A DNA stretch of 64,000 bases, from positions 124,001 through 188,000 of the IMG/VR virus record IMGVR_UViG_3300045921_000730; one strand, written 5' to 3'. The notes beneath the pieces are model-generated. The model saw only the letters and a list, made by a program, of their open reading frames with translations, did not search any database and had not been told where the DNA came from. The translations under genes were made by a program, and so were the position numbers. Shown here piece after piece: positions 14,855-43,322 of the stretch. Every line of letters begins with the position of its first letter. Position 1 is the stretch's first letter.

Positions 14855-16471
14855 TCACTTCAGCATTAAAATCCACTTTCCGTTACCGCAGTCCCAAATT
14901 CTATCATACCCGTTATTTTTCATATTTTCCCATTCGGTGAGATTATTGTCAAAATAATCCAACAAATTACGTTGCTTGTGCTTTTGAAAATATATTCGCG
15001 AATATAGTTTGTGACAATTTTTACGTGAAAAATAAAAATAGTTAGGTTTTGTGTTCTCCACAAACGTAAACCCAGTTTTGTTATAAACGTTTCCGGTTGT
15101 ATAACGCAAATCATTGTAGGTTATAATACCTACTGGAAAAGTATTTTTTATGGCGTGTGTTAAAAGTTTTGAAAAACCACCAACAACTATATAATTTAAA
15201 AGAGAAGAAAAACGAACAATTTCCAACATTCCATCTTGTTTGTAACGATTTTTAGACAAAGAAAGCACTTGAACCAACGTGTTATCATAAAATAGCCCAT
15301 AATTATATTTTGATTTTACGCTACCGCCAAGATGGTTAGCTTCATGAAATATTTCAGCATCTTTTGTTGAAATTGTATTAATTTTACATTTTCTTGCATA
15401 CAAAATGTTTTTTGTTAACCCTAACGTATTCACGATAATAGATTTCACAATATTGGGTTGTTCCAAAATTTCTTTATCCCAAAAATGTAATAGTTTAATA
15501 TTTTTAGTTTTACATAAATTTGTTTTTTGCAAATGGTACGAAGCATTTTTTCCGTTTATTTCACTGTGCCAAAAAATACCATTAATTTCAATAGCTACAT
15601 TTGCAGAGGGAATAAAAATATCTAATTCTTTATTGTCTGGTAATATATCTCTCACATTCACTTGATGTTCGATATTGTTTTGTATTAAAAAATCGACAAT
15701 TATTTGTTGTGGTTTAGACTTAAAATGATGTTGAATATCAATATTAAATTCATTCATTCGTGCCCATATGAGGTGTTTGGACACACCCTTTTCTTCAGCA
15801 ATCTCACCAATAGTTTTTTGTAAAATTGTGTGCTGATATGATAACCATTCACTATTATTAATTTGTTGATCTTTATTTGTTTTGTTATGTTGTTCTTTAA
15901 TTTTTTGTCTTATAGCATCGTGCTGGGAACAATACTTAACACCGTATCTTTCTAAATTTGTCGTTTGTTGCTTTTGTTTGTTTTGTTCTATAAAACTTTC
16001 TTTGCTTCCGTAACGATTAATAATCGTTGCTTCTCTTTTTAGCTTAATTTGTTTTTTTGTTTCTTCAGATTGCTTTAATTTTGCTTCTTTTATTTTTTTA
16101 ATGAGATTGACTTTATCAGAAAGTCTCTTTTTAACTTTTTGTGCTTTAATGCTATTATCATTAGCAGCACACTTGCTGGAACAATATTGCTGAAACGATT
16201 TTTTCGAAGGTATGAAACGGAGCGGAACACTACATACTTTACAGGTTGGCTGTTGTGTAATATTTGAAATAATAACAAATATTCGTTCTTGTAAAGACGG
16301 TTCACCCTCCAAAAAACATGTATTATCAATAATTTGCTTAACTATATCTGGATATTTCCCCACAATCTTTGTAAGATTTGGGTTGATTCGGTGTTTATCA
16401 TTAATAAATTTATACTTTTGTAAAATTTCATTCATATAATTTCCACAAATAAACCTGGTGTTTTTTAACAT
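14855..16471 (-). CDS. Free-standing homing-endonuclease-like protein: Zn finger/HTH + PD-(D/E)xK (Vsr/DUF559-like) + Mom/GNAT-like domain (copy 1)
   Basis: CKVC...YCSSKC; ELDIFIPSANVAIEINGIFWHSE; YARKC...NHLGG...EIVRF...RIWDCG. Confidence 0.75.
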   Translation of the reverse strand: MLKNTRFICGNYMNEILQKYKFINDKHRINPNLTKIVGKYPDIVKQIIDNTCFLEGEPSLQERIFVIISNITQQPTCKVCSVPLRFIPSKKSFQQYCSSKCAANDNSIKAQKVKKRLSDKVNLIKKIKEAKLKQSEETKKQIKLKREATIINRYGSKESFIEQNKQKQQTTNLERYGVKYCSQHDAIRQKIKEQHNKTNKDQQINNSEWLSYQHTILQKTIGEIAEEKGVSKHLIWARMNEFNIDIQHHFKSKPQQIIVDFLIQNNIEHQVNVRDILPDNKELDIFIPSANVAIEINGIFWHSEINGKNASYHLQKTNLCKTKNIKLLHFWDKEILEQPNIVKSIIVNTLGLTKNILYARKCKINTISTKDAEIFHEANHLGGSVKSKYNYGLFYDNTLVQVLSLSKNRYKQDGMLEIVRFSSLLNYIVVGGFSKLLTHAIKNTFPVGIITYNDLRYTTGNVYNKTGFTFVENTKPNYFYFSRKNCHKLYSRIYFQKHKQRNLLDYFDNNLTEWENMKNNGYDRIWDCGNGKWILMLK

Positions 16472-19925: not shown

Positions 19926-21551
19926 ATGCCAAAAGTCGGTGAAATTGACACTAGTTACCCAACCCTTCTTGAAACAGAAAATAAAATCCAACTATTAGAA
20001 CCGTTTACAGGAGCAAAAAATTATCACCAAATGAAATGTCTGGTATGTAATCATATATGGTCAAGTACTCCTATATCAAAACGACAAACTTTTAAAAAAT
20101 ATGGTGTGAGTGGCTGTCCAGTATGTAATAAAAAATCAAAAGAAATAAAATATAAAGCACTTCGAGACAATATTCTATCACAATTGCGTAATGCTGGTCT
20201 TGAAATATTATCAGATTATGATGGTAGTCAAACAACCACTCAATTAGTTACCTTTAAAAATATTCATTGTGGACATGTATTTGATACATATCCTGGTAAT
20301 TTAATTCAATTTGAAAGTAAATGCACTGTCTGTGGTAAGCAAAAAAGAACTAAAAAAATCACAGCATGGTCAAAAGCTAATTCAGAAAAGTGGAAAAAAA
20401 CAGCATCTGCATGGCATATATACAAATCTGAAGTTGCTAAATTAACCGAACAGACATACAAAATGTACAAAGAAACAATCAATCCCAAAAATTTACCGCG
20501 TGGAAAAGCAGGTGTTCCTGGTGCTTATCATTTAGATCATATTGTACCTAAACGTTTCTGCTTTGATAATAATATACCCGCAGAAATATGTGCTAATAAA
20601 TCAAACCTTCAAATGATTGAATGGCACGAAAATGTTGGTATACGTAATCATATAAAAGGCATGATTCCACCTTTGTTTTTTTCATACATAACTTCTAACA
20701 CGAAATTAGAACAATATGCATGTCAGCTTAAAAATATTTTGCCAAATGCTCAACTATTTGTCAATATTGCGGATATTATGGTTACAGCATATGATCAACA
20801 AAGCAATTACGCAATAATTGTTTTACCTATCGATCAATCACATGCTGACTTGAAAAGTGGGTATGTAGCGTACAAAGCATTGACAGCTGCAAACGTAAAT
20901 TTCATTATTCTATTTGAAGACGAATTGACAAACATTCCTTTGTTATTTGCAAAACTTAAACATTATACTCATTCTAATCAATCTGCTCGAATTCATGCTC
21001 GTCAATGTGTTATTAAAAAATGTTCAAAAAAAGAAAAAAAGCAGTTATTAGATTTAAATCATATTCAAGGCAATGACAACTCGCAACTAGCTTATGGTGC
21101 TTACTATCAAGACAAACTGGTTGCAGTCATGACATTTTCGCGTCCACGAATCGCATTAGGACAAAAAAACAAACATCACGACGAAGGGAAATGGGAATTA
21201 AGTCGATTTTGTACAGACGTTCAATATAAAATTCCAGGAATTGCATCAAAACTTTTGACATATTTTAAACGCAATAACTATTGGACAGAAATCTATAGTT
21301 ATGCAGATAAGCGATGGAGTACAGGTAAAATGTACTATAAACTTGGATTTCGTTTAGCAACTGATAATCCACCTGATTATTTTTATGTTATCAATGGAAT
21401 TCGTAAACACAGATGGAATTATAGAAAAGATATTCTTAAACGCACGTTAGTTAATTATGATCCTTCTTTAACAGAATACCAAAATATGCAACGGTGTGGT
21501 TTTTATCGTGTGTGGGATTGTGGGACTTTTAAGTTTGTCATGCAAACTTAA
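19926..21551 (+). CDS. Homing-endonuclease-like protein: Zn ribbons + HNH + Mom/GNAT-like domain (copy 2)
   Basis: CLVCNH...GCPVC; YHLDHIVP...NLQMIEWHEN (HNH); IHARQC...NHIQG...WELSRF...SYADKRWS...RVWDCG. Confidence 0.75.
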   Translation: MPKVGEIDTSYPTLLETENKIQLLEPFTGAKNYHQMKCLVCNHIWSSTPISKRQTFKKYGVSGCPVCNKKSKEIKYKALRDNILSQLRNAGLEILSDYDGSQTTTQLVTFKNIHCGHVFDTYPGNLIQFESKCTVCGKQKRTKKITAWSKANSEKWKKTASAWHIYKSEVAKLTEQTYKMYKETINPKNLPRGKAGVPGAYHLDHIVPKRFCFDNNIPAEICANKSNLQMIEWHENVGIRNHIKGMIPPLFFSYITSNTKLEQYACQLKNILPNAQLFVNIADIMVTAYDQQSNYAIIVLPIDQSHADLKSGYVAYKALTAANVNFIILFEDELTNIPLLFAKLKHYTHSNQSARIHARQCVIKKCSKKEKKQLLDLNHIQGNDNSQLAYGAYYQDKLVAVMTFSRPRIALGQKNKHHDEGKWELSRFCTDVQYKIPGIASKLLTYFKRNNYWTEIYSYADKRWSTGKMYYKLGFRLATDNPPDYFYVINGIRKHRWNYRKDILKRTLVNYDPSLTEYQNMQRCGFYRVWDCGTFKFVMQT

Positions 21552-21688: not shown

Positions 21689-23476
21689 ATGGCTGCTAAA
21701 AAATCTCACGATCAGTTTTTGATGGATTTACAAAAACGAAACAAATTAAATCCAGACAATCAAATTGAATTAATTTCAGGTCAACAATATACAGGTTTAG
21801 ACGAACCGTTGACATTTAAATGTCTTAATGGACACAGAAACTTTACAACGTTGCCTAGATATATTATCCAAAAACAATCAGGATGCCCCATATGTGGTGC
21901 AAAAAGAGCAGGTAATAAAAACATAAAAACAAACGAATCGTTTATTGATAAGTTAAATAAACGAAATATGATATATTCACCTGTAATGTTAGCACCTAGC
22001 GAACAATACAAAGGTGTGCATACAAAAATAGCATTTGTTTGTGGGAATCCTAAACATTCGTCGTGGTTAGCTACACCAGCTTCTATATTGCAAGGACACG
22101 GATGTCCTGAGTGCGGGAAAGAAAAAAGCAGACAAACTCACCAACACAACCATTCACAGTTTGTTGAATTGTTATTAAAAAGAAATGTAGAACATCCACA
22201 TAAAAAAGTATATCTAGCAGATGGTGAAATATATACCCAGCAAAACAGTAAGCTGAAATTTGCATGTGATAAAGGACACATTTGGTCAACTCTACCAGGA
22301 GATGTCATTCACAGAAAAATTGGTTGTCCCTTTTGTGCATCTTCAAAAACATTTTCGTTCATGGCTATAGAATGGCTTACACAGATTGAACGGAATGAAA
22401 ACATTACAATTATCCATCGTGGAAATTCAGATAAAGAATATGTGTTACCAGGTACCAAATATACTGTGGACGGATATTGTAAAGAAAACAACACCGTATA
22501 TGAATTTTATGGTAATTATTGGCACGGAAATCCTCGAATATACAAAAAAGAAGACATTAATGAGCGCGCCAAGATGACATTTGGTGAACTATATGACAAT
22601 ACAATTAAAAAGGAAAATGCAATTAAAGAAATGGGTTATAATCTAATAACAATATGGGAGGATGAATTTGATAACATCAAACAACAACAAACTCAAATTG
22701 ATAAGTTGAAAGAAATAACAAAAAACCTTTCGGTTGACGTTGTTGTTATGCCCATTGATAGACCATATGACCGGTTGTACTATGTTAATCAATTAAATAC
22801 TGCTATACACAATAATAAGCCAACCATTTTTATATTCAACGATGAGTTAAATAACATAGAACTTATTAGTAGTAAATTAAAACATTATAATAAAAGTAAT
22901 AATGCTACACGTATACACGCACGACAATGCGATATAGTTGAAATAACCAATAAACACAAAAAAGATTTTCTTGACAAGTATCATGTACAAGGTAATCATA
23001 ATGCTGAGATAGCATATGGTGCCTACTACAATGATAATCTTGTAGCTGTAATGACTTTTTGTAAGCCACGAATCGCATTAGGACAAAAAAACAAACAAAA
23101 CAATGAACAACGTTGGGAATTAAGTCGTTTTTGTACTGATGTTAATTATCGAATACCAGGAATTGCTTCAAAGTTATTAACATATTTTAAACGCAATTAT
23201 CATTGGGATGAAATTTATAGTTATGCAGACAGACGGTGGAGTGTTGGAAATTTATATGAAACTCTTGGATTTACGTTGGATAGAATAAATCCACCTGATT
23301 ATTTTTATGTTGTTAACGGAGTACGTAAACACAGATGGAATTACCGTAAAGACATTTTAAAAACAACACTACCAAATTATAATCCTAATTTGACAGAATA
23401 CCAAAATATGGTTAATCATGGATTCTGGCGTGTGTGGGATTGTGGGACCTTGCGTTATTCTTTAAAGAACATTTAA
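21689..23476 (+). CDS. Homing-endonuclease-like protein: three Zn-ribbon repeats + PD-(D/E)xK + Mom/GNAT-like domain (copy 3)
   Basis: Three C..H...GCPxC repeats; YTVDGYCKENNTVYEFYGNYWHG; C-terminal domain very similar to copy 2. Confidence 0.75.
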   Translation: MAAKKSHDQFLMDLQKRNKLNPDNQIELISGQQYTGLDEPLTFKCLNGHRNFTTLPRYIIQKQSGCPICGAKRAGNKNIKTNESFIDKLNKRNMIYSPVMLAPSEQYKGVHTKIAFVCGNPKHSSWLATPASILQGHGCPECGKEKSRQTHQHNHSQFVELLLKRNVEHPHKKVYLADGEIYTQQNSKLKFACDKGHIWSTLPGDVIHRKIGCPFCASSKTFSFMAIEWLTQIERNENITIIHRGNSDKEYVLPGTKYTVDGYCKENNTVYEFYGNYWHGNPRIYKKEDINERAKMTFGELYDNTIKKENAIKEMGYNLITIWEDEFDNIKQQQTQIDKLKEITKNLSVDVVVMPIDRPYDRLYYVNQLNTAIHNNKPTIFIFNDELNNIELISSKLKHYNKSNNATRIHARQCDIVEITNKHKKDFLDKYHVQGNHNAEIAYGAYYNDNLVAVMTFCKPRIALGQKNKQNNEQRWELSRFCTDVNYRIPGIASKLLTYFKRNYHWDEIYSYADRRWSVGNLYETLGFTLDRINPPDYFYVVNGVRKHRWNYRKDILKTTLPNYNPNLTEYQNMVNHGFWRVWDCGTLRYSLKNI

Positions 23477-33837: not shown

Positions 33838-35349
33838 TTATTTTAATACACCCTCTTCGGAGGGTGTTTCTTTTTGCCATATCCACCGTATATTACCACA
33901 ATCCCAAATTCTATCATATCCATTATTTTTCATATTTTCCCACTCAGATAATGCCGGATCGTATATTTCTAATAATTTTTTTAATTTATGTTTTTGAAAT
34001 TGAATTCGTGAAAATGTTATATTTGTGTTTTGAGTGTGAAAATATATATAGTTTGGTGGTGTATATCGGTCTATTTTAAAACCAAGATGTTCATAGAAAT
34101 TAGTAATACCCCATTTGTTTTCTGAATATGTTACAATTGATTTTATGTTTTTGAGTTGTGTTGTTGCAAATGTAAAAAGTTTAGATGCACCACCCACAAC
34201 GTTGTGATCTCTTTCAACAGCATAACGTGTTAGTTCATATTGTACATTTTTATCATAACGTGATACAGAAAAACTCATGCACGCAACAACTTTTCCACTG
34301 TAAACCAAACCATAATTGTATTTTGAAGGTACATATCCTTGTGTATGATTTTTTTCATAAAAAGTTTTTATATCTTTTGTTTGTAAGGACACAACTTCAC
34401 ATTTTCGCGCATAAATGTTGTTTATATTTTTTGTTTTATTTGTTTTATGTAACAAACGAGACAATATCAATTCTTTATTTTTAATCCAGTCATATTCGAA
34501 TATATGAATCAATGTTATACCTTGTTTATGACAAAGTGTGGTTTTGTTTAGATGGTAATATCTATTTTTTCCTTTTGTTTCACTGTGCCAAAATGTTCCG
34601 TTGAATTCTATTGCTATTTTATGGTCGGGAAGATATAGATCAACATGATACGGTGAAATAATTTTTTTATTTTCTTCAAACGTTATATCATTGTTTTTGA
34701 GAAAATTACATATTTCTTTTTGGGGTTCGGAAGTAAAGGATTGTCGTTTTGTTTTTAATTGTTTTTTTGATAGCAAAGAAGAAATGCGTGGCTGTGTAAT
34801 GCCCAGCACTTCACCGAGCTCTTTTTGTGAAAGTCCTTGCTCGATCAGCTCTTCGACCAAAACGTTGTTTGCATTTTTGTTTCGTGTTCTGAAATTACTT
34901 TTACTGATTTTTTCTTTTATATCTTGCGATTTTGATGGGTTATCAACGCCATATTTTTCTAACCAACGTTGTTGAATATTTTGTTTTATTTTAGAATTAT
35001 TCATAGCACATTTAACACCATAACGTTCAACGTTTGTTTTTTGGATTTGGACGTTGATATCATTATCTTGTCTTGCACATTTTGAACAACAATATGTGTT
35101 ATATGTGCTTTTTTCTTTTCTCCAAGTAACATGATTGTTATTACATATTTTACATTTAGGTACATAAAATATGTTATTTTCAACATGCCATATTCTTGTA
35201 ACAATGTGAGCATATGCGGGAAGAAAAGCAGTGGCTTCGAGTAAATTACTATAACCTTCGTGATATTTTAACGAACTTTTCTTTTTCATTTTTTTGCTTT
35301 GTTCTATCAACATCTGAAGTTTTTTATCCATTTTAAGCCTTTGTAGCAT
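33838..35349 (-). CDS. Homing-endonuclease-like protein: Zn finger/HTH + PD-(D/E)xK + Mom/GNAT-like domain (copy 4)
   Basis: CKIC...YCCSKC; ERYGV repeats; HTH SQKELGEVLGITQPRIS; VDLYLPDHKIAIEFNGTFWHSE; RIWDCG. Confidence 0.75.
   Translation of the reverse strand: MLQRLKMDKKLQMLIEQSKKMKKKSSLKYHEGYSNLLEATAFLPAYAHIVTRIWHVENNIFYVPKCKICNNNHVTWRKEKSTYNTYCCSKCARQDNDINVQIQKTNVERYGVKCAMNNSKIKQNIQQRWLEKYGVDNPSKSQDIKEKISKSNFRTRNKNANNVLVEELIEQGLSQKELGEVLGITQPRISSLLSKKQLKTKRQSFTSEPQKEICNFLKNNDITFEENKKIISPYHVDLYLPDHKIAIEFNGTFWHSETKGKNRYYHLNKTTLCHKQGITLIHIFEYDWIKNKELILSRLLHKTNKTKNINNIYARKCEVVSLQTKDIKTFYEKNHTQGYVPSKYNYGLVYSGKVVACMSFSVSRYDKNVQYELTRYAVERDHNVVGGASKLFTFATTQLKNIKSIVTYSENKWGITNFYEHLGFKIDRYTPPNYIYFHTQNTNITFSRIQFQKHKLKKLLEIYDPALSEWENMKNNGYDRIWDCGNIRWIWQKETPSEEGVLK
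33848..33875 (+). terminator. Sheath-gene terminator with a cUUCGg tetraloop
   Basis: ACACCCTC-TTCG-GAGGGTGT-TTCTTTTT. Confidence 0.8.
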
Positions 35350-38055: not shown

Positions 38056-38508
38056 ATGGATATTATTAAAAAACAAAAAACAATCGAGCATCCTTTAGAA
38101 GAAGTGTTTGATATTGAAAATAATTCTACTGTGGTCGAATATTCGGAAACGTTGCCAACGCCACCGGTTGATGCACCTATATATGACGAAAAAGACAACG
38201 AAATAGATTTACAGTTTGAAGAAGTTTATGTTTCTGCCATGAATAAAGTAATAGGAATTAGTGATGAAATTGAGCGCGTCGAAGGAAAATATAAAGCACG
38301 TTTAGGTGAAGTAACAGCAACAATGCTTACCGTCGCTCTAAATGCTGCAAAAGAAAAAAGAGAACTTAAACAACATAAAGATAAACTTTTATTACAAAAA
38401 CAAGTTTCAGGACCATCAACAGTAAATAATAATTTAGTTATAACTGATAGAAATGAAATTTTAAAGTTGTTACAAGAAGGAAAAAATTTAAAGAGCGATA
38501 AATTATGA
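38056..38508 (+). CDS. Terminase small subunit (putative)
   Basis: Helical core with C-terminal TVNNNLVITDRNEILK; upstream of the large terminase. Confidence 0.7.
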   Translation: MDIIKKQKTIEHPLEEVFDIENNSTVVEYSETLPTPPVDAPIYDEKDNEIDLQFEEVYVSAMNKVIGISDEIERVEGKYKARLGEVTATMLTVALNAAKEKRELKQHKDKLLLQKQVSGPSTVNNNLVITDRNEILKLLQEGKNLKSDKL

Positions 38509-39215
38509 CCAGGTTTATACAATTTTTATATGAACAAATGCAAGGACGTGTAGCGCGCGGTGTTACAGGACAACAACAAGTAATTGACTACTTGCAAAGT
38601 CAAGGCTACACGATTGATCAAAAAAATATAGCTATAGCACACAGTCAAAGACCTGACATTATTTTACACATTAAAGAATTTTCTGAACCTATACAAATAG
38701 AAGTAAAAACAAGAGATAGGCCCCAAAGACATATTCAAACTATAGAAATGGCTGTTCTTGGTGATAAATCTAATCCAGAGTTGGACAAACTTGTTCAGGT
38801 GATAACTAACGGAAAGTTTAATTCTTTTAAACAAGCGATAAAGTTTTACAGAAAAAAATATATTAATTATAATGAAACAAGCCAAAAACCAAAAACGTTG
38901 CCTGGTTATCCGGGAAACGAAGGAACTGCAAAAAGTGGTACTATACCATCAGAATTGAATTCTTCTGATCCTCAGGCACTTTCGTATATAAGAGAATTGT
39001 ATGTTACTAATTTAAAACATTTTGGAAATAATTATTTTGCTTTGATAACAGGCGAAAATGACGTAAAAATATATTTTACCGGTCTTGGAAAAAACTTTTT
39101 AAAAGCGCCTGCGTTTCCAATGCCTAAACACGTAAAAATAGATTCATATGGCAGTGCTGATAAATTACTTGGCGGATATAAATTTAGAGTAGGACCTAAA
39201 ATTATGTTACCGTGA
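38505..39215 (+). CDS. PD-(D/E)xK nuclease-like protein
   Basis: RPDIILH...IQIEVKT; ATGA overlap with the small terminase. Confidence 0.5.
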   Translation: MTRFIQFLYEQMQGRVARGVTGQQQVIDYLQSQGYTIDQKNIAIAHSQRPDIILHIKEFSEPIQIEVKTRDRPQRHIQTIEMAVLGDKSNPELDKLVQVITNGKFNSFKQAIKFYRKKYINYNETSQKPKTLPGYPGNEGTAKSGTIPSELNSSDPQALSYIRELYVTNLKHFGNNYFALITGENDVKIYFTGLGKNFLKAPAFPMPKHVKIDSYGSADKLLGGYKFRVGPKIMLP

Positions 39216-39252
39216 ACTGTCGCCTAACATAAATGAAGTAGCTTCCTGGGCC
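39212..39252 (-). repeat. IS200/IS605-end-like remnant (family B, copy 3)
   Basis: Minus strand reads GGCCCAGGAAGCTACTTCATTTATGTTAGGCGACAGTTCAC; overlaps the TGA of the upstream ORF. Confidence 0.55.
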
Positions 39253-39328
39253 AGATCTATAAACGAAATCATATCTTCGCAGCCATTATTTTGAACAATC
39301 TCTGTGATATACAGAAAACAATAAAGCC

Positions 39329-40258
39329 ATGGCAAAATCAAAAAATCCTTATCTTAAAAAAGCCAACGAACAACACGAGTACACAAATCAGCAAGTTTTA
39401 GAATTAATGAAATGTGCTGACGATCCTATTCATTTTATTACTAATTATGTTGTTATTGAACATCCTGTAAAAGGTGCCATTAAGTTTGATATGTACCCAT
39501 ATCAAAAACGAATAATTAGAGCATTTAAAGATAACAGACAAGTAATTGTTTTGTCAGCAAGACAAACAGGTAAAAGTATTTCATCAGCAGCTTATTTGCT
39601 TTGGTTTGCTTGTTTTCATTTTGATAAAACTATTCTTATAGCATCAAACAAAAACGACAATGCTATGGAAATGATTCACAGAATTCGTTTTATGTATGAA
39701 AGACTGCCTCATTGGTTAAAACCAGGTATCACCGAAGACGGATGGAATAAACATAGTGTGGGGTTTGATAATGGTTCGAGAATAATTTCGCAAGCAACCT
39801 CTGAAACAACAGGTCGTGGTATGTCAATATCTCTATTGTTTTTAGATGAGTTCGCTTTTGTTAGAGAAACAATTCAAGAAGAATTTTGGACTTCGGTTGC
39901 ACCAACTTTAGCAACAGGTGGTAGTTGTATTATCACATCAACACCGAATGGTGATACAAACAGATTTGCTCAACTCTGGAGAGGTGCGTGCGTAAAAGCA
40001 AACGATAACGGATTTGTTCCCATTGAAGTAAAATGGAATGAACCACCGGGACGAGACGAAAAATTTAAACAAAAAGAGATGGCAAAGATAGGTGAAACCC
40101 GATGGAAACAAGAATACGAATGTTGCTCCATAAATACAAAAGTAGAGATAATGGATGAGAATAATAATATACTTTGTTTAACTATTGGAGAACTTTATAA
40201 TGTTTTATCAACAAATAGCGAGAGATCTGACACAAAAATATGTAACATCTCCAATTGA
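39329..40258 (+). CDS. gp17: Terminase large subunit, N-terminal ATPase extein + split-intein N fragment
   Basis: ARQTGKS Walker A, LLFLDEFAF Walker B, TSTPNG; ends QEYE|CCSINTKV...TIGELY. Confidence 0.92.
   Translation: MAKSKNPYLKKANEQHEYTNQQVLELMKCADDPIHFITNYVVIEHPVKGAIKFDMYPYQKRIIRAFKDNRQVIVLSARQTGKSISSAAYLLWFACFHFDKTILIASNKNDNAMEMIHRIRFMYERLPHWLKPGITEDGWNKHSVGFDNGSRIISQATSETTGRGMSISLLFLDEFAFVRETIQEEFWTSVAPTLATGGSCIITSTPNGDTNRFAQLWRGACVKANDNGFVPIEVKWNEPPGRDEKFKQKEMAKIGETRWKQEYECCSINTKVEIMDENNNILCLTIGELYNVLSTNSERSDTKICNISN
40121..40258 (+). mobile_element. Split intein N fragment (45 aa)
   Basis: Block A CCSINTKVEI followed by TIGELY, then stop. Confidence 0.85.
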
Positions 40259-41717
40259 CGGGAAACAATATTGTCGTAAAAATGGAGAATTTTTACGACA
40301 CATACGACAACACGAATTTGATAACTATCAATCTTTTTTTGAACACTATTATCCTTCACTAATACAATACTGTCCGGTGTGTAACAAAAAATGTACTTTT
40401 TTACCCTCAAAAATGACATATCGCAAAACTTGTGGGTCAAAAAGTTGTGCAAATCAAATATCTTCAAACGTAAAACAAGGATTCACAGAAGAACAGAAAC
40501 AAATTCGAACTGAACGATACCGACAATCAATGTCATTAAAGACAAAGAAACAAATAGAGGAAATATCCACTAAGCGAAAAAGCACATATGTTTTAAAATA
40601 TGGTGTTGATCATCCTTGGAAATCTTCGCAGGTAAGAGAAAAAATTCAACTCACAATGGAAAAAAAGTATGGACACAGGAACTTCAGTTCAACTCTGATT
40701 CCTCCTGAGAGTAAAATACTTTTGGAAAATCGTGAGTGGCTTTACACCAAACACGTATTAGAACAAACTCCGCTATATGTAATTGCCAAACAACTGAACG
40801 TTGGAGATAGAACTGTAGGTGTTTACCTACATAACCACAACATCAAAACACACAATTTTCAATCTGCACAATGGGAAAAAGAATTAGAAGATTTCTTAAA
40901 AGAACATAATGTTCAATTTCAACGAAACGCAAGAGATATCATTCCTCCAAAAGAATTAGATTTTTATATTCCAAAATTTAATTTGGCAATCGAGTTGTGT
41001 GGTTTATATTGGCATAGCGATGCGAAAGAAAGAATCACCAAACATTATCATGAACACAAATACAAAGAATGCCAACAACAAAATATTAGATTATTAACAA
41101 TATTTGAAGACGAGTGGGAAAGAAAACATGTTATTTTTTCTAAAATTAAACATTTGATACGTGCAACAACAAGCAAGTGTTATGCTCGGAATTTGCAAGT
41201 TGTCAGTGATATTTCTAAGACTGAAAGAAATAATTTTTTTGAAAAAACACATATACAGGGAGATGGTAAGGGTAGTATTTGTATAGGATTACGAAATGCC
41301 AACCAGGTACTTGTTGCACTAGGATTATTTTCAAAACAATCCAACCAAAAAGATACTTATGTTCTTGAAAGATATTCTACCTGTGAACACGTCGTTGGTG
41401 GATTCAGCAAAATCATTTCTGCGTTTGAAAAACTTACAAATTGCAAAAAAATAATAACATTTGCTGACAAACGTTGGAGTAACGGTGAACTATATTTAAA
41501 AACAAATTTTTATAAAGATAAAGACCTTCCAATAGATTATGCATACGTAGTAAATAATAAACGAATACATAAATTTAATTTCAGACACAAACATCTAAAG
41601 AAACGTTTGAACAACTACGATCCGTCACTATCCGAATCACAAAATTGTAATTTGCATGGAATATATAGGATATGGGACTGTGGGAAAATTCGATTTGTTC
41701 GTGAGAGGAAATTATGA
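40200..41717 (+). CDS. Homing-endonuclease-like protein between the intein halves: Zn finger/HTH + PD-(D/E)xK + Mom/GNAT-like domain (copy 5)
   Basis: GGAG SD before ATG 40200; CPVC...TCGSKSC; ELDFYIPKFNLAIELCGLYWHSD; FADKRWSNG; RIWDCG. Confidence 0.8.
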   Translation: MFYQQIARDLTQKYVTSPIDGKQYCRKNGEFLRHIRQHEFDNYQSFFEHYYPSLIQYCPVCNKKCTFLPSKMTYRKTCGSKSCANQISSNVKQGFTEEQKQIRTERYRQSMSLKTKKQIEEISTKRKSTYVLKYGVDHPWKSSQVREKIQLTMEKKYGHRNFSSTLIPPESKILLENREWLYTKHVLEQTPLYVIAKQLNVGDRTVGVYLHNHNIKTHNFQSAQWEKELEDFLKEHNVQFQRNARDIIPPKELDFYIPKFNLAIELCGLYWHSDAKERITKHYHEHKYKECQQQNIRLLTIFEDEWERKHVIFSKIKHLIRATTSKCYARNLQVVSDISKTERNNFFEKTHIQGDGKGSICIGLRNANQVLVALGLFSKQSNQKDTYVLERYSTCEHVVGGFSKIISAFEKLTNCKKIITFADKRWSNGELYLKTNFYKDKDLPIDYAYVVNNKRIHKFNFRHKHLKKRLNNYDPSLSESQNCNLHGIYRIWDCGKIRFVRERKL

Positions 41718-42046
41718 CAGAACTTTTGGCAAAGAACACAAAAAACTGGAAAATACGAACGAATGTTGGTTTTGTTCCTTTTGTTGGGGTTGCTCACATG
41801 GGAAGAAAACCAATATACAAAATAACATTTGAAGATAGTACATTTATAGATGTAACTGATACCCATACCTTTTTTACATTAGATGGACGTGAAATTACAA
41901 CGAGGGAACTTTCGCCAGGTATAACATTAATGGGCATCGAAAATAAAACAATATCTTCAGTAGAGCCTGCTGGTGAAGAAGAAACTTTTGATATCGTTGA
42001 AAGTGAAACACATACATTTTTTGCTAATGGTTTATTGTGTCATAAT
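41714..42046 (+). mobile_element. Split intein C fragment (111 aa)
   Basis: Block B VTDTHTF (TxxH), block F ETFDI...HTFFANG, block G CHN followed by Cys+1. Confidence 0.88.
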
Positions 42047-42793
42047 TGCGAATTTTTATCAAGCGATCCATTACTAATTGATACGCTTGTTCTTGCTAAT
42101 TTAACAAACAGCGTCAAAGATCAACAACCAGTAGCAATTATGGGAGATATTTTATTTTTTAAACAACCACAAAAAAATTCAATATATCTTGTAGGGATGG
42201 ATCCGGCAACAGGCAGAGGACATGATTATACGACAATTACGGCTTTTGAATTTCCGTCGATGGAGCAAGTGGCACAATTCAGATCGAATACAACATCTAC
42301 AGTCGATGCGTATCAAAATTTGAAACGCCTATTAAAAGTCTTTGAAAAAACACAATCTACTGTTTATTATTCAGTTGAAAACAATGGTGTCGGTGAAGGA
42401 ATTATTGCTTTGTTACAAAACGATGAATCACCACCAGAGACAGCTGAATTTGTATCTCAATCCAACAGACAAAAAGAAGGTATGGTAACAACAAAACAAG
42501 CAAAAATGAAAGCTTGTTTAACGTTAAAAGAAATGATAGAAAGAGATAAAATAAAAATTAAATCACCTTTAATAATTCAAGAACTAAAAAACTATGTAAG
42601 AAAAGGCGGTTCATATGCTGGTAAAATAGGATCTACTGACGATTTAGTTTCATCTTTGTTAATTGTAGTAAGACTTTTAGAAGAAATATCTTCATTTGAA
42701 CAAGAAGCTTATGATAAATTATATTCTTCTTCGTATTTTAACGTCAATGATGAATTTGATGAAAACGACATACCGCCAGCAATAGTATTTTAA
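41714..42793 (+). CDS. gp17: Split-intein C fragment + terminase large subunit C-terminal nuclease extein
   Basis: ...FANGLLCHN|CEFLSS; RNase H-like YLVGMDPATG..DYT, VENN, DDLV. Confidence 0.92.
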   Translation: MTELLAKNTKNWKIRTNVGFVPFVGVAHMGRKPIYKITFEDSTFIDVTDTHTFFTLDGREITTRELSPGITLMGIENKTISSVEPAGEEETFDIVESETHTFFANGLLCHNCEFLSSDPLLIDTLVLANLTNSVKDQQPVAIMGDILFFKQPQKNSIYLVGMDPATGRGHDYTTITAFEFPSMEQVAQFRSNTTSTVDAYQNLKRLLKVFEKTQSTVYYSVENNGVGEGIIALLQNDESPPETAEFVSQSNRQKEGMVTTKQAKMKACLTLKEMIERDKIKIKSPLIIQELKNYVRKGGSYAGKIGSTDDLVSSLLIVVRLLEEISSFEQEAYDKLYSSSYFNVNDEFDENDIPPAIVF

Positions 42794-42824
42794 AGTAAAT
42801 ACTACACGAAAGGAATTATATAGT

Positions 42825-43322
42825 ATGAAATTATTTGAACTTACTCAAAAACCAACAGTTTATTTTCCAATTGGACCTTCAGGAACAGGTAAATCAACAG
42901 TATATAAAAAGTTAAAAGAAAAAAATCCGAATCTTAATATTTTTTCTTTAGATATTCTTCGTCATAAATTTTATGATAAAAATGATTATGCCAAGGCTTG
43001 GAAAATGTCAACAGAGGATAAAGATTTTTCAAAAAAAGCAAATGATGAATTTTTCAAAATTTTGAAGCAAAAACAAGATTTATACATTGACAACACAAAC
43101 TTAACTCCAAAATCAAGAAAGTTTTATTTAGAACAAGCAAAAAAGCACGGATATATGGCAACGGCAATTGTCTTTGATATCGATTTAGACACAATTATTA
43201 AACGACAGACAACAAGAACGGACAAATCTGTTCCTGAAGAGGCTGTAAGAAGGCAATACCAATCAATGATCTTGCCACAAGAAAAAGAATTTGACAAAAT
43301 AATTAACGCAAATGAATTATAA
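42825..43322 (+). CDS. P-loop kinase (AAA_33 / polynucleotide-kinase-like)
   Basis: GPSGTGKST, SLDILR, YIDNTN, R..R.DKSVPEEAV. Confidence 0.8.
   Translation: MKLFELTQKPTVYFPIGPSGTGKSTVYKKLKEKNPNLNIFSLDILRHKFYDKNDYAKAWKMSTEDKDFSKKANDEFFKILKQKQDLYIDNTNLTPKSRKFYLEQAKKHGYMATAIVFDIDLDTIIKRQTTRTDKSVPEEAVRRQYQSMILPQEKEFDKIINANEL

Follow-up and report, generated by a model that had tools for sequence, protein, structure and literature searches.

How does a phage obtain a working large terminase subunit when the gene for it is interrupted by another gene? The question is raised by a stretch of 64,000 nucleotides (nt), positions 124,001 to 188,000 of the IMG/VR record IMGVR_UViG_3300045921_000730 (hereafter the window), in which three genes on one strand (+), between positions 39329 and 42793, read in order as the ATPase half of the large terminase gene (terL) running into an N-terminal intein piece (IntN), a homing-endonuclease gene, and a C-terminal intein piece (IntC) running into the nuclease half of TerL. 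We consider it very probable that this is a fractured terL, in which a class 1 mini-intein at the ATPase/nuclease boundary has been split about 29 codons in by a free-standing homing-endonuclease gene, and in which the two halves are joined by protein trans-splicing. The features on which the argument draws are these, in window coordinates:

39329-40258, +: gene 1, 309 amino acids (aa), made up of 264 aa of the TerL ATPase part and 45 aa of IntN
39329-40120, +: TerL N-terminal extein (N-extein), ATPase domain, 264 aa, C-terminal end WKQEYE (Pfam Terminase_6N; phrog_5989)
40121-40207, +: IntN core, 29 aa (Cys1 to Leu29; block A and the ..GELY..L segment), from the alignment of 17 IntN pieces and their profile against CatN
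40187-40190, +: ribosome-binding site of gene 2, GGAG, coinciding with the Gly-Glu codons of the IntN GELY motif (sequence reading)
40200-41717, +: gene 2, from ATG at 40200 to TGA at 41715-41717, 505 aa
40200-40868, +: gene 2 residues 1-223, DNA-binding part (Pfam DUF7487; AlphaFold2 model)
40208-40258, +: IntN tail, 16 unconserved residues and stop; the 5' part of gene 2 read in another frame
40869-41156, +: gene 2 residues 224-319, Vsr-like (I-Bth0305I-type) nuclease domain (match to PDB 3r3p, Foldseek)
41157-41717, +: gene 2 residues 320-505 and stop, Mom-like GNAT-fold domain (Foldseek 8bv8; weak hhalign)
41703-41708, +: ribosome-binding site of gene 3, GAGAGG, 5 nt 5' of its ATG (sequence reading)
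41714-42793, +: gene 3, 359 aa, made up of 111 aa of IntC and 248 aa of TerL
41714-42046, +: IntC, 111 aa, with block B (T48..H51), block F (D93) and block G (H110-N111) (CatC and gp41-1 matches; AlphaFold2)
42047-42793, +: TerL C-terminal extein (C-extein), RNase H-like nuclease domain, 248 aa, with the N-terminal Cys+1 (CEFL) (Pfam Terminase_6C; gp17 match)

That the outer genes are the two halves of one terminase is plain from their matches. The N-extein is found by Pfam Terminase_6N (E 3e-13) and by the terminase large subunit family phrog_5989 (E 3e-59), and is 55% identical to TerL of Xanthomonas phage XacN1; the C-extein is found by Pfam Terminase_6C (E 2e-10) and matches gp17 of T4 and RB49 by sequence, and the C-terminal portion of the AlphaFold2 model of the gene 3 product superposes on the T4 gp17 nuclease domain (3cpe, E 6e-13). 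The intein site falls at the boundary of the ATPase and nuclease domains, and the two exteins together make 264 + 248 = 512 aa, within the 511-525 aa of intact homologs. One uninterrupted homolog, P0179, runs across the site as RWRQEYECEFLSNDPLLIDT, reading QEYECEFL just as the predicted spliced junction does, and its contiguous sequence over the insertion site is QEYECEFLSNDPLLIDT; because P0179 is continuous here, excision of the intein would restore a normal 512-aa TerL. An original prediction, made from the letters of the window, had proposed this three-gene layout with its coordinates, lengths, gene 2 start signals and overlaps, together with the QEYE-CEFL junction of a 512-aa product, and all of these check out.

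The same prediction had called the flanking peptides an atypical split intein with a short IntN and a long IntC, and comparison with known inteins bears it out. IntC scores 18.4 bits against TIGR01443 intein_Cterm (curated cutoff 15.6), matches the gp41-1 intein at E 3e-8, and matches CatC, the C piece of the atypical TerL split intein Cat (6dsl_B), at E 2e-6 over residues 5-114, in an alignment that reaches position +3 and includes the +1 Cys-Glu. The AlphaFold2 model of the gene 3 product (predicted local distance difference test, pLDDT, 87) matches more than 30 intein structures at E < 1e-5, consistent with a HINT fold, and in Foldseek it lies on 6dsl_B with a template modelling (TM) score of 0.77 and an identity of about 26%. 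A search of the PDB with the single 45-aa IntN sequence returned nothing relevant; a profile built from 17 IntN pieces matched CatN (6dsl_A) at E 1.3e-10 over profile positions 2-29. The intein assignment is thus more than a chance match.

The residues expected of a splicing intein are in place. IntN begins directly after WKQEYE and opens CCSINTKV, and IntC closes with HN followed by CEFL. Cys1, immediately behind QEYE, is invariant in the 17 aligned IntN pieces, in which Leu29 is nearly so; block B in gene 3 reads T48-D-T-H51, with H51 invariant and position 48 either Thr or Ser in relatives; and H51, D93, H110, N111 and C112 (Cys+1) are invariant in 39 IntC-TerL-C homologs that are only 45-60% identical. 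The class 1 set of Cys1, TxxH, His-Asn and Cys+1 is therewith complete, and the split point is atypical, IntN carrying block A only and IntC blocks B, F and G.

Two oddities of this IntN had been singled out by the original prediction, the possibility that its tail is simply overlap with gene 2 and its Cys-Cys start. Among 16 relatives the IntN open reading frames (ORFs) are 30-45 aa long, of which only the first 29 residues align, ending ..ELY..L; what follows the conserved LY..L in these relatives is 1-16 aa that do not align. Because the relatives' tails vary so in length and sequence, and because CatN ends one residue past the 29-aa core, the suspicion about the tail is supported: the last 16 residues of the IntN in the window are best read as an unconserved tail produced where gene 1 runs, in another frame, into the 5' end of gene 2. 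A Cys-Cys start does occur here, and as a peculiarity of this locus it does not stand, since Cys at position 2 recurs in seven relatives (L004, L005, L011, L016, L049, L051 and L061) and is therefore a trait of the clade.

Complete motifs do not by themselves say that a peptide bond is made, and a non-covalent, two-subunit terminase, in which the intein pieces serve only as association domains, would also leave the phage with a usable enzyme. There is precedent in Aeh1 NrdA, which is split by a homing-endonuclease gene and reassembles without splicing (PMC3045599); IntN and IntC of atypical split inteins bind each other (PMC11766414); in T4-type TerL the ATPase and nuclease domains fold as separate units; and splicing at this locus is predicted from sequence. 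Against this, association needs neither Cys1 nor the block B His, the terminal His-Asn or Cys+1, all of which are invariant across the 17 IntN pieces and the 39 IntC pieces of 45-60% identity, and inteins of the same family are reported to splice (PMC11766414). We therefore regard assembly without splicing as improbable, and prefer trans-splicing.

On the trans-splicing reading, one late operon would give three proteins, TerL-N-IntN, the nuclease and IntC-TerL-C. The short IntN, probably disordered by itself, would dock on the nearly complete IntC to complete the HINT fold, and Cys1, the block B Thr and His, the terminal His-Asn and Cys+1 would then carry out trans-splicing, with the 512-aa TerL joined QEYE-CEFL as the product. 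No second terL was found in the 64-kb window and, since this is the sole terL there, the spliced protein is presumably needed for DNA packaging.

The genes are packed tightly. The start signals of gene 2 lie within the IntN codons of gene 1, its GGAG standing nine nt 5' of the ATG at 40200, and the ATG of gene 3 overlaps the stop of gene 2 in a shared ATGA, so that gene 2 shares 59 nt with gene 1 and 4 nt with gene 3. A mechanical ORF list begins gene 2 at TTG 40185; the ATG at 40200 is the likely start instead, as relatives conserve the N-terminal residues that follow it. RNA folds at the three gene starts are no better than those of shuffled sequence, and the RNA around the gene 2 GGAG is unstructured. 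Promoter-like sites numbered 30 (shuffle mean 20.5, standard deviation 4.3) and terminator-like sites stood at the shuffle mean, with no interpretable site in either class. A perfect 12-bp hairpin with a 5-nt loop at 40272-40300 (+), 14 nt 3' of the gene 1 stop and inside the gene 2 codons for CRKNGEFLRH, was considered as a regulatory element and rejected, since of 11 distinct relatives that have this peptide motif only 3 possess it; it is kept in L005 and, through two double (apparently compensatory) changes, in L006, and eight other relatives are without it.

This arrangement also bears on whether the interruption is removed at the RNA level, with gene 2 sitting in a self-splicing group I intron whose excision would restore a contiguous terL, either plain or containing the intein. 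Endonuclease genes of the Vsr-type family phrog_559, related to gene 2, do reside in terL group I introns of Bastillevirinae (PMC11878797), and genes 1 and 3 here share a reading frame (locus L009). Searching 39000-43200 against Rfam at E up to 1, however, recovered no group I intron, and only a chance match to the sRNA AgvB (E 0.17); gene 2 overlaps both neighbours and leaves a ribozyme core no non-coding room; RNA at both junctions folds no better than shuffled sequence; the two terL halves of relatives are often in different frames; and each half has its own stop or start codon as well as its own intein motifs. An intron at this site has an exceedingly small chance of being the explanation, and protein splicing remains our reading.

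Contigs carrying the sequence come from sequencing runs labelled as hot springs or microbial mat metagenome, and a metagenomic source invites the suspicion of a chimeric contig in which assembly joined a nuclease gene into terL. In run X1, however, a single contig spans the whole stretch with zero differences; in run X5 a 9.3-kb contig covers 38800-43127 with 31 substitutions and gene 2 in place; contigs of run X7, from a separate study, tile most of the stretch, again with substitutions and with gene 2 in place; and syntenic relatives come from unrelated samples. The likelihood of an assembly artefact is vanishingly small. Of the strain differences listed, those at third codon positions make up 5/7 in gene 1, 5/5 in gene 2 and 20/21 in gene 3, and given this bias all three genes look to be under purifying selection. 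The differences are unevenly spread: in gene 3, X5 and X7 have about 18 substitutions in common over 470 nt (41838-42307), and gene 2 (40200-41600) has 5 variable sites in 1.5 kb among the differences listed, a density of 19 (gene 3 stretch) versus 3 (gene 2) per kb. Such mosaic variation could come from recombination or gene conversion around the nuclease gene.

What, then, is the gene that sits between the halves? Its protein matches the homing endonuclease family phrog_3339 at E 2e-98 and belongs to a very large phage family, with 2,240 proteins at E up to 1e-5 and members on at least 567 stretches in IMG/VR. The AlphaFold2 model (pLDDT 94) divides it into three parts. Residues 1-223 comprise a small beta/zinc-ribbon-like start, helical DUF7487 repeats (Pfam E 8e-8) and a helix-turn-helix, and conservation of the N-terminal SPID..YCRKNG.FLRH module is confined to the subgroup resident in terL. 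The nuclease core matches PDB 3r3p by phmmer (E 0.015) and by Foldseek (3r3p_B, TM score 0.78, root-mean-square deviation 2.9, 25% identity); D254, E265, W271 and H272, together with D304/E305, are invariant in the family, and, drawing on the published account of Vsr-like enzymes (PMC2677866), these positions probably correspond to the Vsr residues.

For the C-terminal domain the best Foldseek match is Mom of phage Mu (8bv8_A, E 2e-7), followed by GNAT acetyltransferases. A weak hhalign alignment (E 0.059) places Mom R111, D149, R151 and Y159 on the family-invariant R391, D423, R425 and Y432, with the equivalent of S124 near a GGFSK motif in uncertain register. Searching gene 2 against Pfam and NCBIfam gave no Mom hidden Markov model match at E up to 0.1, and in related Atlas clusters Pfam PF25680 Mom is found in only 12-31% of members. 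The original description of gene 2 as a nuclease fused to a Mom/GNAT domain is right in structural terms, through the Foldseek matches to 3r3p_B and 8bv8, and the protein is accordingly modelled here as a nuclease with a Mom-like GNAT domain. It is tempting to go further and suppose that this domain, in gene 2 and in several thousand Hef-like endonucleases, is catalytically active rather than only a DNA-binding scaffold, pairing a nuclease with Mom-type, possibly aminoacyl-tRNA-dependent, DNA modification. We think this unlikely; were it true, the modification could mark or protect the element's own allele or genome, giving a homing endonuclease with built-in self-immunity.

Gene 2 has company in the same genome, which holds at least five Mom-type/Hef-like genes and is heavily colonised by this endonuclease family. 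Four more paralogs, about 30-36% identical to gene 2, lie in the window at 14855-16471 (-), 19926-21551 (+), 21689-23476 (+) and 33838-35349 (-); of these, two are Hef-like genes of full length, the other two match in the nuclease/Mom-like or the Mom-like part only, and one, on the strand opposite to the tail sheath gene, stands directly 3' of it.

We take gene 2 to be the mobile agent, which probably cuts terL alleles that lack it, whether intein-less or carrying an intein without the nuclease gene, and which would then be copied in by recombinational repair with the intein halves carried along. The relatives are consistent with such a history. The 12 closest relatives of gene 2 listed are 43-57% identical to it, and the three that were looked up (3/3) all sit between IntN and IntC of terL on syntenic contigs. 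We surveyed 80 IMG/VR loci. The majority have an intact terL. A split terL with a full-length nuclease gene is found in L004, L005, L006, L010, L013, L014 and L049, a split terL with a shortened nuclease remnant in L019, L021, L042 and L061, and a split terL from which the nuclease gene is absent in L011 and L016; at least 14 distinct relatives retain the split arrangement, and the split intein persists whether the nuclease gene is full-length, shortened or absent. In two loci IntN continues in frame into the N-terminal module of the nuclease, L051 (ORF ending in an HNH-like motif) and L061 (ORF ending after 123 aa). These fusions of IntN to the Hef module lie at L051:1587-2609 and L061:4563-4934, the fused part being the N-terminal DNA-binding module, and the HNH-like motif of L051, in place of the Vsr/Mom domains, suggests that one nuclease domain has been exchanged for another on a shared targeting module.

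In a tree built from 62 distinct TerL exteins, a sample chosen by similarity to IntC-TerL-C whose proportions are therefore not meaningful, interruption is patchily distributed and needs at least 7 changes, 6 of them forced by well-supported branches, and near-identical exteins can differ in state (L064 versus L085; L004 versus L062). This interleaving of interrupted and intact alleles fits a mobile element that has been repeatedly gained or lost.

A TerL fragment of 593 aa, P0161, carries at the site seen in the window a contiguous mini-intein, in which an IntN-like piece of 31 aa runs straight into M-NWKILTP.., resembling the start of IntC; it looks like an in-frame fusion that followed loss of the nuclease gene. 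At its start the same fragment has the C piece of another intein, inserted in the Walker B region (..HN/CLFLDEFAFVR). In relatives, further insertions of about 0.8-2.4 kb interrupt terL in its ATPase half, both close to the Walker A region and beyond it: around TerL residue 80-90 in L016, L017, L038, L049, L059, L060, L064 and L066, and at residue ~185-215 in L051-L054 and L061. In this group of phages, terL is a hotspot at which several intervening elements have settled independently.

Several points weigh against the reading of a functional, trans-spliced terL interrupted by a homing gene. The runs that contain the sequence are all DNA; the IntN has its extra tail of 16 residues and its Cys at position 2; none of the strain variants is an allele without gene 2, which bears on whether homing is current; the way in which the exteins of the tree were chosen biases the frequencies of the states; and the search for terL covered the 64-kb window of a genome of at least 244 kb.

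The last of these leaves space for a terL that is dead, broken by a selfish nuclease gene, with the packaging terminase encoded outside the 64 kb visible; in some relatives (L025, L049 and L088) terL does have beside it a second, distant TerL-like gene. Strain variation is nevertheless third-position-biased in all three genes, both halves are full-length with complete motifs, the arrangement is kept in the 14 or more distinct relatives, terL stands in its normal place 3' of the small terminase gene, and the window itself is without a second terL. We give a dead terL a very small chance and take the interrupted gene to be, in all likelihood, the working one. Of the neighbouring genes, a 236-aa ORF (38505-39215, +) that separates the small terminase gene from terL is without a PHROG match, and the relatives L004 and L005 have near terL a gene for a TnsA-like N-terminal nuclease domain.

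Read in this way, the locus, its three genes all intact, is a clean and complete example of the means by which a selfish nuclease gene can make an essential gene of a phage depend on trans-splicing of its protein. Its relatives display the whole cycle, from intact terL through a contiguous mini-intein to a split intein whose nuclease gene is full, decayed or lost, and to a nuclease fused to either intein half, and so lend the 2009 gene-breaking model the support of many more loci than the original paper had. There is a practical side as well, for protein labelling calls for atypical split inteins whose N piece is short, and few natural ones have been characterised; the choice could be widened by a Cys1/Cys+1 member from runs labelled as hot springs or microbial mat and by the natural variants of the 29-aa N piece, about 15 in number.

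Split inteins of this kind in TerL have reportedly been described before, AceL-TerL by Thiel et al. 2014, GOS-TerL by Bachmann & Mootz 2015 and Cat by Stevens et al. 2018. GOS-TerL and AceL-TerL share with the window a T4-type large terminase as host gene and a split after block A (N1), with IntC of 104-122 aa holding the other motifs and IntN of 25-37 aa. The published IntN of AceL-TerL is 25 aa and that of GOS-TerL 37 aa, reducible to 27, with Ser1/Cys+1; these two and Cat are all reported to trans-splice, AceL-TerL working best at 8 °C (PMC11766414). Compared by published descriptions, the window differs in its IntN ORF of 45 aa with a core of 29 aa, in having Cys1/Cys+1 with Cys2 where GOS-TerL has Ser1/Cys+1, and in its source, a hot-spring or microbial-mat metagenome.

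The GOS-TerL locus has the same fractured-gene layout, a free-standing gene for an endonuclease lying between the halves. A terminase locus was already among the fractured genes of Dassa et al. 2009, its intein "fractured at an unusual point" and its C part, of 122 residues, containing all motifs but N1 (PMC2677866). The original prediction had acknowledged that fractured phage genes and short-IntN TerL inteins were known, and rightly: terL as host gene, the unusual split point and an arrangement of this type are all already published (PMC2677866), and cultured phages are annotated with them as well. The fractured loci of that paper have non-coding spacers of 27-51 nt (PMC2677866), whereas the genes in the window overlap by 59 nt and 4 nt.

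Cat (PDB 6DSL) is homologous to the window's intein in both halves and shares the start of the C piece, NTKN.K..T..GF..F.G, and Cys-Glu at +1/+2. It differs in being an engineered consensus, the window's IntN running 16 residues beyond the CatN-matched region and its IntC being about 26% identical. As to the insertion site, the CatC chain continues with Cys-Glu as here, and the cases in cultured phages lie at a homologous ..QEH/C site. Those cases are Aeromonas phage PX29 (gp17A/gp17B), Yersinia phage MHG19 and Vibrio phage Va1, in which terL is split at the homologous site with an IntN of 32-37 aa, a long IntC and an endonuclease between; the GenBank annotation of PX29 names a "putative N-intein" and a "GIY-YIG endonuclease and C-intein". 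They belong to the T4-like Straboviridae, and their exteins share about 30% identity with those of the window; their endonuclease is of the GIY-YIG type in PX29 and MHG19 and is fused in frame to IntC in PX29 and Va1, whereas that of the window is a separate gene. A nucleotide search of GenBank phages matched only an 84-149 nt piece of gene 2, and there is therefore no close cultured relative among them; one such DNA-level match is the "Hef-like homing endonuclease" of Acinetobacter phage 133, Hef-like being the label used in cultured T4-related phages.

For gene 2 the nearest solved enzyme is I-Bth0305I (PMC3239194, PDB 3R3P), with which its nuclease core shares the fold and the conserved acidic, His and Trp positions. 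The family of Vsr-like homing endonucleases was first predicted from fractured genes (PMC2677866), and its members reside in fractured genes and group I introns and also occur as free-standing genes (PMC2677866, PMC11878797). Beyond I-Bth0305I, solved as the catalytic domain alone, gene 2 adds the C-terminal Mom-like GNAT domain and the N-terminal module specific to the terL subgroup. Mu Mom (8BV8), the best structural match of residues ~320-505, performs a tRNA-dependent carbamoylmethylation of adenine for which R111, S124, D149, R151 and Y159 are essential (PMC13219725); gene 2 differs from it in that sequence similarity is marginal, the domain is fused to a nuclease and its family is not known to have modification activity. 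The locus leaves knowledge of this type of fractured-terminase system unchanged, and its own features are modest: its sequence, the overlaps of 59 nt and 4 nt, a long unconserved IntN tail, a resident nuclease of the Hef/Mom type, and its environment.

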